Shown: positions 4,886-37,018, counted from the first letter of the whole stretch. The stretch is DNA of 63,989 bases, filler included, from Reticulomyxa filosa (GCA_000512085.1; 21 parts of 21 records of this genome joined end to end with filler, not necessarily neighbours in it); one strand, 5' to 3'. Notes: a model not told the origin generated them from the sequence alone. Program-made: numbers and translations.

Positions 4886-7697
4886 CGGTGGCAAATCACA
4901 TGGAGAGTTTGTTTCAAGTATTGGAATACGAAAAGCATATGAGAAATATATACGGTGTGTACGAGTCGTATGTCAAAACAATATTAATAGTGGAGTATTT
5001 AAAAGGCTGTGCAAACCTATATAACCACGTTTATTACTACAAAGAGGATAAAATGAAAAAATTGAAGCATGCCAAATTGATGATGCAATTATTTACACCG
5101 TTTAAGTGAATCCACGCATATTATATGTATATATATATATATATATTATATATATATATATTGTGATCTATAGTATACGTACACATCTATACGACAATGA
5201 CAAATGACAAACACAGCGCATTAGAGCCTTTGCGAAAAATAATCGAAGAGGCAATAATGGATTATGCCGTGTTGGTGTCTCAGCCACGAAAAGGAATGCG
5301 AGATTACAAAGGACATTTCTTTTGGGGCAAAGATTACAAACGTGTGGAGTCCATCTACGCGGATTGCTATTTGCTTTTTTTACAAACGTACACTCGCTTG
5401 TGCAATGACGTGACGATGACGACCCAGGACAAGTCGGACAACAGGGAAAACCTTTTGATCGATCCGTCTCGTTGCATCACATTTTTCGCCACGACGCTAT
5501 ACGGACTGATGGGTTGCTTGCACTCGCAAAATCGCGAAAAGACGCAGACAACAAAGAATCTCTGCATTCAATTGTTAGAAGTGCTCATTTCCATTGACTA
5601 CGTCAATGAGCATTGCATAAGCGAGGCGATGCTATGTAATCTCGTGTCGATGCTGCATGGGGCCGTCCTTGCAGATGTGCATTGCTATTTGTACGCACTC
5701 ATGCAATCGACCCCTGGCAATACCGGAATGCCGACGCCATCGCTATCGCTTCCGTGGCAAGAAGATATTAGTCGTATCTTATGCAAGATCACATCCGTGG
5801 TATTGAAACAGTCGAAGCAAGTATCTGTCCAAGGCAACACATCTTTTGTTCCGCAGTCCATTGTCAATGACCTGTTCCATGTGCTCATTGCCTGTTTCAT
5901 TGACCCAGTGGAAGTGCTGCTGGCATGGACCACTTCTGACTTTGACACTTTGCCGTCGTTCTCGCATGGTTCGCCCATGGGAACTCCGCGCTTGACTTTA
6001 CATCGCAAGAACGAAGTGGAGCCACTCCAAAAAACACCGAGTCAAAGCCAAGACAAAATGCCCGCGCATTTTGGACACGAGGTCAAAGTACTTTGGAGTG
6101 ACCAATGGCTGGGAGCCATGGATGACTTGGCCAATCACTTTTGTGCTCACAACGATCGCAACGCTCACTCGGCTCGATTATCTGAGGTTGTAAATACCAC
6201 CGATCTGCTCAATATTGTTACGTCTATTACATTGCTGATTTCCCATGAATCCGCTGTTGTGTCAGAAGATGATAGAAAGACAGACTCCAAAAGACCTTTT
6301 CGGACAATCGAGCTGTCCAAAGCCGACAAGCAATTGTCCGTTCGCATCGCTCACAAACTGCTTTATTGTGTCCAACGATACTATCAAACCGAGGAACATC
6401 GAAACATCGCTTGTTCCGTCCTCAGAGAAAATATCTTGCACTTGCTCAAACAATTAAAAAAGTTGAGGGACAAATCAAATCTATTAATTATTTGCTCATA
6501 TATGCATATATATATTTTTTTTTTTTTGTTTGCGATATACACATATGCATTATATGTAAAACAAATAAAAGATGGGAAACGGCAAAGACACCTTCGTTCA
6601 ATGAAGTTATTGTTTTGGTTTGGCATATGTCACACTTGCACTTCTGGATGGTATCGGAGGATAAAAAAGCCAAGTCGATCGAACGTCAAAACGAAAATGA
6701 AAATGAAAATGAAAATGAAGAGAGATCATCGTCTTCGTCGGAAAGTGAGCTGTTGGAGGCCGTGCGTGATCTTTTGGTAAACAAACTTTCGGAAAAACAA
6801 TACGTTCAAGCCATTGGCGAAGGCTTGAGCCATTGTTTCCTGGATATCGTCACCTCGTTAACTGTTGAACAAAAACAAGGCAGTAATGTCGATATTTTGC
6901 TTGATACCTCGTCACCTCTTTATTTCCAAATTGAGACGCTCGTGCTCTTGCTTCCTCATATTCTATTAAATTTCATCGAAAGTCAGAGCCATCCTTGTTT
7001 GGCGGTACGTGTAACTCTTTTTTTTTTTTTTGAAATGGAATGTCGTTGTACTGTGTGGAAATACTTGTACGGATATCATAGATAACACATTGCATTTGCC
7101 ATGCACTGGATATTGCCACGTTGCTTCATTCCGTGTCTCCTTTTTATCAAACTAATAATAGTTTGCAAGCCTTGTATGATTTGGTCGTTCCATTAATTAT
7201 TAATTGCATCTGTTCTTATGACAGCGTTGATTCTGTCTCGGATGGAAGAAATCATTGTGTGTTTATAATTTTTATTTTCTTCTTTCCATCTATTTATTTC
7301 ATCTATTTCTTCAAAAAAAAAATTTGTGTGTTGTTTGTCTTACTTATTTTAATAAATCGTGACCATCTCCTTACCAGTGCTGCTGTTTATCACAAGAAAT
7401 ATTATGACCAATCCTACTTTGAAGATTTCGGTTGCAAGATCTCCTCGAGATAAACTTGTTATATTGCAAAAGCAACTCAACGCGTTTTCTCAGCGGCTTA
7501 TCCAGAGCACAAATAATCAAAATGAGCAAAAAATAAACACAACGTCTATAATACAGACTGCACAAACATCTACCCAAAAACAAACTCAAGATAGTAATGG
7601 ATCCTCTCAAAAATTAAAAAAAGACAAAATAAAAGTACTAGAGAAACCTACTTTAGTCACAACTGAAAAAAATGAAATTGACTTTAGTAAGTTTTGA
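4886..7697 (+). CDS. HEATR5/Laa1/SWEETIE-like HEAT-repeat AP-1 accessory protein, C-terminal part, multi-exon
   Basis: By recall, YESYVKTILIVEYLKGCANLY, AIMDYAVL...GHFF...VESIYADCYLLFL and NLCIQLLEVLI align with HEATR5 segments (YxES.TME.LAVLKAWAEVY; ALKDYALL...GAFY...HY...W..IL). Ends in a low-complexity linker plus IDFSKF*. Several AT-rich introns. Not confirmed by search. Confidence 0.55.
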
Positions 7698-9981: not shown

Positions 9982-10955
9982 CCTTTCATAAACATAAAAC
10001 ATAAAACAAAACGCAATTTTTTAAACCTAGGCAACAAAAAAAAAAAAAATTAATATATACATATTTCCATATAATAACATCAAATACACCCAAGCGAGGC
10101 TTTGAGCATTATACGTGCTCAAAATAATAACAATAATGCTCTCGTAATTTCAGTGCGATGACATCCTTTTTTTTTTCCTCTACCTCCTCCTGGTTTGATT
10201 TTTTTTCCTTGTGGCCATATTAACATGATCATCATTTTGTAAAGATATCTTTCAGAAAGATTTTGTGGACAAATAGCATACTTTAGCAAAATAGCTCTCT
10301 GAATAATATTTACCCCATTGTTGTTGTCAATACATTGGTTGTACTCCCTCTTCTTGTATTCGCATTTGAATGTACGGCACAAATGTTTTTCTTCATGCAC
10401 AGCTACAATAACAGTAAAAAAAAGTCACCCTAAAATGATCTCTATGAATATTTTCATTTTATTTGTAAAAAATCAATACCTGTTAAAAAATTTTAAAGAA
10501 AATAAAAAAATTCACCGTTTTCTACACTTTTATTAAAAACGATATTTGTGTTCTCCAAGCGCGTAGATATCATTTTAAAACAGAATTTTGAAAAAATATT
10601 GATTTATCATGAATAAACTCACAAATGTTTATTGGAGTCATTTTGGAGATCTTTTTTTAGCTGTTGATTGTATATGTAAAAAAATATACTACACAAAATT
10701 TATGAGATTTTATTTTGAATGGTGGGTAAATACGAAACCCTCTCATTACTGATAGGTTCATGTGGCAGCATGTTGTCTAAAAAAAATCTTCTTTGATGCG
10801 TGGTCAGACAAAGAGACGTGAATTAAATTTTCTTCCTCAAAACTGCCCTTTTCCAAGATTATTAATCTTTGGGTGGCTAGAAACAACGAAGAAGATTTTG
10901 AGAAAAGTGAATAAACAAACAAACAAAAAAATAAATAAAAAAGAACATGTGCCAT

Positions 10956-12247
10956 TTATTGATGAGAAGGATCCGAATTGTTTTTACTTGCCATCAGCCC
11001 AAAAGTGAATCTATCGACCTCAGTTTTGTAATCTCCAGGTGACAATTTATACACAGTATGCAGATTCAAATCCAAGTGCGGAATGGATTGGATAGGCAAT
11101 TCCATGAAATACGAATATAAGCATCGGAGAACAGCACGATGAGCAATGACAAGAACAGGTTGTGTGCTTCGTTCTAGCTCAAAGATGACAGGCTCCAATC
11201 TTTGAATGACATCTTTGTAAGACTCACCTTGAGGATAGCGATAGGAGAGCTTGTCTTTTGCTCGAGCAGTAAATTCATTGGGCATTTCGCTTTCGATTTG
11301 TTTGTACGTTTTCCCCTCACAAATGCCAGCATCAATTTCATTCAAAGCTCTCCATTGATAAATTTTGACATTGGGAATTCTTTTTTTGAAAGCGTTTGCA
11401 GTTTGGACTGTTCGTTTCATAGTGCTGCACCAGATATGCATATGTCCTTGTTCTCGGTTGTAGAATTCCGGTTGCATGATGATCCAATCCGCCATCGCTT
11501 TCGCATAGCGTTTGCCAGAAGACGAAAGCGCGCCATCCCCACCGATTCTGCCAGAAACATTGAACTCAGACTCCCCATGTCGAGTCAAAAATATCGCCTT
11601 CTTTTTCAAGTCGATGTGCATCAAAAAGTACAGTATCCTTGCCGGCAAGTAGCCCCGAATCATATGTCCAATTACATATTTACCTGCGTCGATTAGTTTT
11701 ATAAAGCTTCCTTCTTCTTCTCGAACCGCCTCATATGCATTTTGATAATGAGCGATACGTTGTTTGAAGTCCTTAACTTATATACATATGCATATACATT
11801 TATACGTATGCATTATGTTAAGTGGCTAGAACGAAGGAGGGGGGGAAAAGGGGGCCATTAAAAAAAAAAAACACCTGCTTCTTGTGGCGCGACATGAGCA
11901 TAATCAGGTGATCTTAGCTTGACATTCAATATATTTTGGTCAATAAGTTTTTCATCGTGACACTCACTTTCTAGAAATACCAAGTTGACCTTCAGACGGG
12001 AGGCCACATCGGCGGAAGCAAAAAAGGTTCGGATCATTAACCTTCTTTTCACTGTACTATTCGTCCCGTCCAATATCGCAACTTGACCGCCATTGTACAA
12101 AAACTCCGCTGAATCTTTCAATGCCATTTTGGCAAATTCCTCGCGTTGCTTGGTAGCCTCTTCATTCAAGGGGTCAAAAAAATTCGCACTTGCTTTTCCT
12201 AATGTTTCGCTTGCTCCAATTCGACGATATGCCCCGATATTAAATGA
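10956..12247 (-). CDS. PFKFB: 6-phosphofructo-2-kinase/fructose-2,6-bisphosphatase, 5'-truncated at the contig end
   Basis: Kinase half: SFNIGAYRR, NFFDP, VAILDGTNST, SPDY, DFKQRIAHY. Phosphatase half: LTRHGESEFN, LNEIDAG, RYPQGESY, IAHRAVLRCL. Intron 11874-11777 (GT-AG) joins QEA|VKDFK. Confidence 0.93.
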
Positions 12248-35700: not shown

Positions 35701-35845
35701 CGCCCAAACCNNNNNNNNNNNNNNNNNNNNNNNNNNNNNNNNNNNNNNNNNNNNTTAATTAATTAANNNNNNNNNNNNNNNNNNNNNNNNNNNNNNNNNN
35801 NNNNNNNNNNTTTATTAATTAAATTAATTTGTTGATGTTATATAG

Positions 35846-37018
35846 CAAAGAGCCTCAAGCGCGCATGTCTACGGGTTTGAAACCCATCAAACAAAAAAAA
35901 AGTTTTGTTCTAAATTTGTTTTTTTATGTTATAATAATAATAATATTATTATTATTTATAGATGTCCGATGCTCCAGCAACTTCCTGTGTGCTCCAACGG
36001 GTCTATAACCCGTATCCAACAAAAAAATAAAAAAGTTTTGATTTATCTTTTATTGTTTATATTATTATTAAAGATTATTATGTGTATGTATGGCAACAGC
36101 ATCAGAGACCCCGTTCAGCCTCCGACTACGGGTTTAAAACCCATACAAAAAAAAAAAATGGTTTGATTATATGTTTTATTTATTTATTATTACTATAATT
36201 GTATTACGACATGACAACTGTTTACAGGCAACGGTGCAAAGGCAGTCATGTGCGCTTCCAGCGGCTCCAGCAAATCCAACAAAATAAAAAAAGGTGTGAT
36301 TTATTTCTTAAAATTTATGTCAATACTGAAAGCCAATATTCTGCACACAGAGTCAACGCCCAAAGACGCCATCCAACACGCGACGACGGGCCCTCAGCAG
36401 TGCAAAACAAAAAAAAAAAGTTTAATTCTATTTTGTTTTGCTTTCACTTACAAATACAATACTGTCATACTTTATAGAAGCAAAGTGCCACTCGCCTGGC
36501 CGCAGCGAGTCCAACGGGTTGTAACCAACCACAAAAAAAAAAGTTTTGTTCTTATGTTTCTGTTCTTTTTACAATATAACAATAACAACATTATGATTTA
36601 TAGGGCCAAATGCCTCGAACACCCGCTCCAGCGTACTAAGGGTTTACACCCGTATCAAATAAAATAAAAAAAAGGTATGACATGTTCTTGATTTTTTAAA
36701 TTGTCATAACGGCTTGTTATTACTTATAGGGCAACTGCTAAATCCCCACCTGCGCTATCCAATACGGGATCACAACCCGTCTCAATAAAAAAATAAAAAG
36801 TTTTGTTTACTAATGTGTTTTACTTGTTTATAATTATAATATTATTATTGCCCATAGAGCCCCGCCCAAATCTCACACTCGAACGGGCTCCGACCCGTCA
36901 AACAAAAAGAAAAAAAGTTTTGTTGTTTTATTTTTGTTTTTGTTTATATATATTATAATAATATAATTATAATATAGGGCCCCTGCCACCTCCAACGCCT
37001 CCAACGGGCTCCGACCCG
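35846..37018. repeat. Non-coding array of at least 10 units: unique GC-rich segment + conserved hairpin motif + A-tract, separated by GT...AG spacers
   Basis: Units start at 35846, 35962, 36100, 36228, 36351, 36478, 36604, 36730, 36858 and 36978. Motif ACGGG-N(5-7)-CCC(G/A)T, degenerate in units 4-6. No reading frame stays open across units. Confidence 0.85.

Follow-up and report, generated by a model that had tools for sequence, protein, structure and literature searches.

A tandem array in the foraminiferan Reticulomyxa filosa with the anatomy of old, diverged mini-exons separated by short introns

What kind of element alternates a variable C-rich segment with a small conserved hairpin, unit after unit along one strand of a eukaryotic genome? 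The case considered here lies at positions 35811–37018 of a stretch of 63,989 nucleotides (nt), filler included, joined from records of Reticulomyxa filosa (GCA_000512085.1) and called the window below. Ten units follow one another head to tail on the + strand, and gaps of N bound the piece on both sides. The original prediction for this locus proposed a guide array resembling those of clustered regularly interspaced short palindromic repeats (CRISPR), in which a variable address in each unit would be coupled to a constant protein-binding handle. We find that a spliced repetitive transcript fits better than a guide array of this type, and we put at about 0.5 the probability that the array consists of old, diverged tandem modules, each a mini-exon plus a short intron, joined in a spliced transcript. 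What is established is the anatomy of the module, its recurrence at a second locus, an almost invariant GT and AYAG at the module boundaries amid only ~60% overall identity, and the direct joining of the second array to a co-oriented Vps35 exon. The reading as exons and introns is drawn from these sequence features.

Each window unit runs from a YAG through a C-rich segment, a hairpin of the form ACGGG(N6-7)CCCRT, an A-tract and a GT into a T-rich stretch that ends at the next YAG. The original prediction had listed at least ten tandem units built of YAG, C-rich segment, motif, A-tract and GT, all of which are present in 35846–37018, and its nine listed motifs occur as written and in the order given, with units 4 and 5 degenerate; its unit description passed over the 55–67-nt AT-rich stretch that separates the GT from the next YAG. 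The spacing from motif to motif is 119–131 nt (period ~125 bp), the GT stands directly after the A-tract in 9/9 units, and AYAG precedes the unit in 10/10. A pattern combining the motif, its tail and GTTTTGWT has four matches in the window against 0.00 expected from 100 shuffles. Composition changes sharply along the unit: the exon-like parts (56–73 nt) are A/C-rich and G-poor (A 38%, C 30%, G 18%, T 14%), and the spacers between them (55–67 nt) are 51% T and 29% A, with a GC content of 0.10–0.30. Mean column identity among the window units is 55%, and Tandem Repeats Finder did not detect the array in the window because the copies are too diverged.

The same family occurs elsewhere in the genome, where a search for further arrays had been suggested. 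A HMMER protein scan with a read-through open reading frame (ORF) at 36248–36664 returned one real relative, P0002, which is the annotated R. filosa protein RFI_15257; look-ups with the window ORF and two further protein searches with P0002 gave nothing beyond P0002 itself. The contig concerned, R. filosa ASPP01011166.1 (L004), carries 11 units of the family at 5213–6505. Units are ~0.6 identical both within and between the two arrays, and the arrays show no collinear orthology. Equal identity within and between arrays, together with the lack of collinearity, indicates that the family is old and has not been homogenised.

When 20–21 modules from the two arrays are pooled, the conservation is seen to be concentrated at the spacer edges. 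G at +1, T at +2 and T at +4 are each found in 20/20 modules, A at −2 and Y at −3 in 21/21, and G at −1 in 20/21; the only comparably invariant features are the A-run and the GG/CC core of the hairpin, and the positions flanking the GT/AG edges vary. Because GT and AYAG are kept while the units drift to ~60% identity, these positions are constrained rather than recently copied. Spacer lengths over both arrays are 49–85 nt, mostly 55–67 nt, which fits the R. filosa mean intron length of 87 nt (PMC13746701) and was counted in favour of introns. In nhmmer profiles the exon-like parts hold 26–46 bits of information versus 7–22 bits in the spacers. A T run follows the A-tract immediately in only eight of 18 spacers; T4 or longer occurs within 25 nt in 17 and is missing from one. 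Inconsistent T runs beside an invariant GT favour a splice donor over a terminator for RNA polymerase III (Pol III).

The second array also supplies a coding context. The TTTATAG at the end of its last spacer abuts a Vps35 exon of the same orientation (Pfam Vps35 positions 565–659, E 3.7e-15; PDB VPS35 chains, E 4e-12), and the intron that follows this exon begins GTTTAGTAGC, with a GTTTAG donor like those of the array spacers. This junction is the strongest evidence that GT and AG would act as splice sites and that the + strand would be the transcribed one.

A mechanism along these lines can be sketched. RNA polymerase II would transcribe the + strand, and the spliceosome would excise the AT-rich GT...AG parts, with predicted junctions such as 35901|35962 and 36034|36100 in the window and 6447|6506 on L004. 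The product would be an A/C-rich modular RNA made of repeats of a variable C-rich stretch of 25–36 nt, the hairpin and an oligo-A tract. Recruitment of U1 by a U-rich tract downstream of the donor, through a factor of the TIA-1/Nam8 type, is a mechanism established elsewhere; here the weak GTTTNN donors could be offset in this way by the U-rich 25 nt that follow them. The hairpin and A-tract would then form a cis-acting RNA element present in every module, serving protein binding or exon definition.

Several observations weigh against splicing or against the Vps35 context and keep our confidence near one half. The donor consensus, GTTT[TAG][GAT], has T at +3 in 18/20 modules and G at +5 in only 5/20, so that complementarity to U1 is not seen. 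By comparison, the donors of three clean introns on L004 read GTAAGT, GTGCTT and GTATGC, and a TACTAAC branch site is present in two of these introns. In the nine window spacers the YTRAY closest to a 3′ end is 42 nt from it, so that none falls inside the last 40 nt, although the spacers may carry AT-rich, degenerate branch sites. One L004 module lacks the AG. The AT-rich spacers are homologous to one another (z = 6–7 over block shuffles) and their interiors are conserved, including a block resembling TATTATAATAATA, which is unusual for introns. A search for the window stretch in sequencing runs matched no RNA run; the sole match was a DNA contig of 197 nt. L004 does not contain the N-terminal 560 positions of Vps35; the Vps35 context may be that of a fragmentary gene or the product of an assembly join. 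Finally, when the reading phase is followed exon by exon and stops are counted per exon, the three window phase chains contain 3, 4 and 5 stops, with units 7 and 8 closed in every frame; in the L004 frame fixed by the Vps35 exon two of ten exons are closed, and the L004 motif occurs in all three frames.

These frame counts bear directly on whether the modules are tandem coding exons, that is, a repeat of ~22 residues rich in S, T, P and A and ending in oligo-lysine (AAA), whose stops would be draft errors or recent pseudogene decay; on this view the hairpin motif would be no more than a set of conserved codons. Some window features would fit such a repeat: along the phase chain the motif occupies one frame in seven of the nine motif-bearing exons (p ~0.02), codon alignments of units 1 and 3 and of units 9 and 10 show in-frame indels and a number of synonymous changes, and NCC-codon composition has a weak three-base periodicity (chi-square p 0.049; 0.09 against random offsets). 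The Vps35-anchored chain is the most open of the three L004 frames, although two closed exons of ten against 4.3 expected is a trend only (p 0.11), and every in-frame stop is TAA, with two lying in A-rich tails, where draft assemblies are prone to error. Yet the window chain would have to lose three in-frame stops and the L004 chain would need two closed exons explained away, and the window periodicity is not replicated on L004, given that the motif is read there in all three frames. At the level of codons, GGG and the C of xAC are invariant even though they fall at third positions, peptide similarity is 956 in the chain frame versus 966 in a shifted one, and the A-runs of 9–15 contain almost no AAG, unlike selected lysine codons. 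Four exon peptides had no Pfam match. A stop-free spliced path can be drawn only with three ad hoc internal alternative donors, which we take as overfitting. TAA is an ordinary stop in a UbiA gene on L004, where it ends the ORF, which makes a reassigned TAA unlikely; a ciliate-type code was rejected on this ground and because the unit spacing is not a multiple of three. An intact coding repeat is accordingly quite unlikely in our estimate.

Unspliced coding was also rejected, as all six window frames contain 11–30 stops. The absence of TGA from + frame 1 between 35881 and 37018, a run of 1.1 kb with only TAA and TAG, is probably due to chance, there being ten TGA on the strand in all, and it is at odds with the unit spacing. 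A 139-residue read-through ORF at 36248–36667 has no exact record and no word-based relatives. The earlier statement that the + strand is non-coding thus holds for spliced and unspliced readings alike: no frame is intact, and unit 8 joins unit 7 in being closed in all three. With no open frame in the exon chain, the product is expected to be non-coding, UTR-like (resembling an untranslated region) or decayed; as judged from the frames, the chain is most likely non-coding, UTR-like or a decayed low-complexity repeat, with an intact lysine-rich repeat as a minority possibility.

The 17-nt hairpin motif has a mean column identity of 81%, with five of its 17 columns invariant, and forms a weak stem of 3–5 bp, frequently unpaired at its outer positions. 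Taken by themselves, the window copies have no compensatory stem changes, and stem position 2 is mispaired in three of seven. Pooling both arrays gives 13 copies without gaps, in which 83% of cells pair and double changes occur at two of six pairs, in three cells (two C-G to U-A and one G-C to A-U), a score reached in 5/500 shuffles; two of the three cells may reflect one inherited event. Covariation therefore lends modest support to pairing in the hairpin, and the proposal that the hairpin is selected for its structure draws this modest support from the two arrays together, the window stem being short and uncompensated. Exon-sized folds in the window have no clear advantage over shuffles (z −0.4 to −2.4), the minimum-energy folds of units 1 and 3 leave the hairpin unused, and RNAalifold on whole exon-like parts gave no consensus fold beyond two G-C pairs. 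Two larger structures were considered and set aside. Whole-unit folds reach z −2.3 to −3.7 in some units, through pairing of A and U runs that is inconsistent from unit to unit. Pairing of the A-tail with the T-rich beginning of the spacer, which would loop out the donor, is as stable for non-cognate as for cognate pairs (−5.15 and −5.20 kcal/mol; 9030/20000 permutations), and it is therefore only compositional.

The features that suggest splicing can also be read without it. One possibility is that the array is an unspliced, old, minisatellite-like DNA repeat, intergenic or within one long intron, in which the palindrome ACGGGT..ACCCGT binds a protein, for example as a B-box/TFIIIC-like or Myb/Reb1-like site, the A-tract and T-tract act as a bending or termination element, and GT and AG are simply parts of the motif. 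Several loops come close to the transfer RNA (tRNA) T-loop or B box, such as GGGTTCGAAACCC at L004 6293–6309, although ARAGORN finds no tRNA gene and there is no conserved A box. On the minus strand each unit reads as a T-run followed by the palindrome, which is the layout of Reb1-type terminators of RNA polymerase I. Conserved spacer interiors, splice signals that are weak by R. filosa standards, the lack of an ORF and the missing RNA-run match for the window stretch would all follow readily from DNA that is never spliced. Such a repeat would nevertheless be unusual in showing no homogenisation, since its units are ~60% alike within and between arrays, unlike those of satellites, and compensatory changes in the stem would not be expected of two independent half-sites. 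It also leaves without reason both the invariant GT and AYAG at the compositional edges and the ending of an array exactly at a same-strand coding exon. We regard an unspliced repeat as unlikely.

Alternatively, each unit could independently give rise to a small RNA of 60–90 nt, a guide or adaptor with a variable C-rich 5′ part, a T-arm-like hairpin and oligo-A, transcribed from a TATA-like promoter in the spacer ~30 nt upstream of a G start after TATAG and terminated in the T runs. The TATTATAATAATA-like block conserved ~25–32 nt upstream of the boundary would suit this arrangement, as would the G with which most exon-like parts begin, the T4+ runs found near the start of nearly all spacers, the modest covariation of the hairpin and the absence of an ORF. 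TATA-like strings, however, are expected anywhere in DNA that is 80–90% AT, the T runs are inconsistently placed and in one spacer missing while the GT is invariant, and the last L004 'promoter' would face a protein-coding exon. Nor do the RNA folds help, with two G-C pairs from RNAalifold and stabilities no better than those of shuffles, or the family searches, which gave no Rfam, tRNA or small nucleolar RNA (snoRNA) box match; the variable parts are homologous rather than acquired, no effector-like gene lies nearby, and the window stretch has no RNA-run match. Small RNAs made one by one therefore seem very unlikely. Similar odds, long ones, attach to a broader suggestion that covers this case as well: RNAs from the foraminiferal array family might be modular, with a C-rich address that diversifies, a constant T-arm-like hairpin and oligo-A, acting as guides, adaptors or a protein sponge, whether as separate 60–90-nt species or as one spliced multi-module RNA, and would then represent a eukaryotic RNA system without a described counterpart.

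The CRISPR-like form of the guide hypothesis is not supported by the same data. Its segments were said to be unique and unrelated, but some similarity remains among them (z = 3 over shuffles), along with shared sub-motifs such as GGCCC... and GCCTCCAAAC, so the supposed addresses are diverged homologues; the supposed handle is weak. The strictly conserved positions are instead the GT and AYAG at the edges of the AT-rich spacers, which have the look of splice sites rather than of small-RNA processing sites, and the L004 array runs straight into a coding exon on its own strand. That no effector gene is visible, as first reported, extends to the genes within 5 kb of the L004 array (WD40, UbiA and TPR/prefoldin); the window piece has no flank. 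Searches for known RNA families gave no match: Rfam 15, taken to E up to 10, gave best matches of 21 bits against gathering scores of 43–180 (E 0.8–9), ARAGORN reported 0 tRNA genes, and scans for C/D and H/ACA snoRNA boxes found no match. Pattern-scan matches in JGI metagenomes (two) and IMG/VR (one) contain the motif only once or twice each and were dismissed as chance, both JGI matches being ordinary coding DNA. P0001, a 550-residue protein of perfect tandem repeats of ~70 residues, matched the window ORF in six stretches (E 4e-5) and was likewise rejected as a low-complexity artefact.

With the tandem mini-exon and short-intron reading preferred, the window piece can be described along its length, all features lying on the + strand. 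It opens at 35811–35845 with the gap-cut 3′ part of an AT-rich intron-like spacer, ending TATAG. Exon-like unit 1 (35846–35901, 56 nt) has its hairpin at 35871–35887 and the A-tract at its 3′ end; intron-like spacer 1 (35902–35961, 60 nt, GC 0.10, GTTTTG...TTATAG) leads to unit 2 (35962–36034, 73 nt), whose hairpin at 35997–36013 has a 6-bp stem. Spacer 2 (36035–36099, 65 nt, GTTTTG...AACAG), unit 3 (36100–36160, 61 nt, hairpin 36128–36144) and spacer 3 (36161–36227, 67 nt, GTTTGA...TTACAG) follow. The degenerate pair comes next. Unit 4 (36228–36293, 66 nt) lacks the hairpin motif and retains the CCAACAAAATAAAAAAAG tail, and unit 5 (36351–36419, 69 nt) keeps only the 5′ arm of the hairpin, ACGGGCCC, at 36386–36393. 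Between them lies the least intron-like spacer, spacer 4 (36294–36350, 57 nt, GC 0.30, GTGTGA...CACAG), which lacks a T4 run; this spacer, through which the chain frame is open, makes up most of the ORF at 36248–36667 together with exons 4 and 5.

Beyond spacer 5 (36420–36477, 58 nt, GTTTAA...TTATAG), unit 6 (36478–36542, 65 nt) carries an altered hairpin at 36514–36530 that folds as GGTTG/CAACC. Spacer 6 (36543–36603, 61 nt, GTTTTG...TTATAG) and spacer 7 (36675–36729, 55 nt, GTATGA...TTATAG) flank unit 7 (36604–36674, 71 nt, hairpin 36638–36653), and unit 8 (36730–36799, 70 nt, hairpin 36764–36780) follows, both units with stops in all three frames. Spacer 8 (36800–36857, 58 nt, GTTTTG...CCATAG) is the sole spacer with a TACTAAT element. 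Unit 9 (36858–36916, 59 nt, hairpin 36883–36898) and spacer 9 (36917–36977, 61 nt, GC 0.10, GTTTTG...ATATAG) lead to unit 10 (36978–37018), which the gap cuts within its hairpin at 37004–37018. The 197-nt contig recovered from sequencing runs is identical to window 36024–36220; it occurs in two 'synthetic metagenome' runs of one study (X1, X2) and may derive from the source sample or from a mock community.

The surroundings of the second array contribute further observations. The RFI_15257 gene model (L004 6057–7393) takes its start ATG from inside an array A-run and reads across AT-rich spacers to the Vps35 exon; the opening ~115 residues of the model are probably artefacts of annotation, and it covers only positions 559–684 of the 726 in Pfam Vps35. 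Directly upstream of the array, L004 4790–5190 is a 400-nt tract that is C/A-rich and G-poor (C up to 44%, G 4–12%) and has no spacers; within it are a telomere-like AAACCCTCAAACCCTAAC and segments, AACTCCGTCCA among them, that look like the variable portions of exons in the array. An ORF at L004 4005–4253 (+) has a weak Pfam Helitron_like_N match that is below cut-off (E 0.068) and too weak to use; if it were real, a gene-capturing Helitron could contain both the array and the Vps35 fragment. Introns of the UbiA and TPR/prefoldin genes (L004 8798–8940, + strand, and ~10140–10253, − strand) combine canonical donors (GTAAGT or GTGCTT) with exact TACTAAC branch sites, and are a useful reference for R. 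filosa splice signals. At the contig end, a long AAT/ATA trinucleotide microsatellite occupies 11560–11691 on the − strand, in or beside a called gene fragment.

At present the array is a well-defined puzzle rather than a demonstrated new system. If its modules are spliced, they form a tandem mini-exon family constrained at the level of nucleotides (hairpin, A-run and splice sites) and not of protein, with unusually weak GTTT donors. They would then offer a natural case for studying exon definition in foraminiferans and the origin and persistence of tandem exon-intron units, as well as an example, in RFI_15257, of how repeats break draft assemblies and gene models. The modules would be of far greater interest if they proved to be separate small RNAs.

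Comparison with known systems places the array among, but apart from, several repeat architectures. CRISPR arrays and guide clusters, such as snoRNA clusters and kinetoplastid guide RNA cassettes, likewise alternate regularly between a short, conserved palindromic motif and segments that vary more. CRISPR repeats, however, are near-identical, whereas the array motif averages ~81% per column and is lost in two window units; CRISPR spacers are unrelated and near-constant in length, whereas the array segments vary from 25 to 48 nt and retain their residual similarity. The array differs further in its GT...AG spacer of 55–67 nt per unit, its lack of an effector gene and its eukaryotic host. The hairpin resembles a tRNA T-arm or Pol III B box in its 5-bp stem and 7-nt loop, often TT(C/T)NNAA, with GGGTTCGAAACCC as the best copy, and the A-rich tail after the hairpin recalls tRNA-derived short interspersed nuclear elements. 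The array nevertheless has no cloverleaf, A box, acceptor strand or target-site duplications, and its T-rich spacer, if part of the element, would end Pol III transcription at once. Satellite DNA is homogenised to high identity, in contrast to the ~0.6 identity seen within and between these arrays. If the array is spliced, it has parallels with the A-repeat of Xist, where GC-rich hairpins are joined by U-rich linkers: both would have repeated short GC hairpins, homopolymer-rich linkers, variable sequence and no ORF. The array has one exon per module, however, and shares no homology with Xist.

In its likely working, the array is most like tandem exon duplication, as in the PEVK exons of titin and the exon clusters of Dscam. 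Copies of a short exon and its intron lie head to tail on one strand, in or beside a gene, and have diverged while their splice signals were kept. Known tandem exon duplications preserve an open frame and compatible exon lengths, whereas the array has no open frame, exon-like parts of 56–73 nt and mixed phase. Each of its exon-like parts also ends in an A-run of 7–15 and bears a small hairpin that is conserved as nucleotide sequence.

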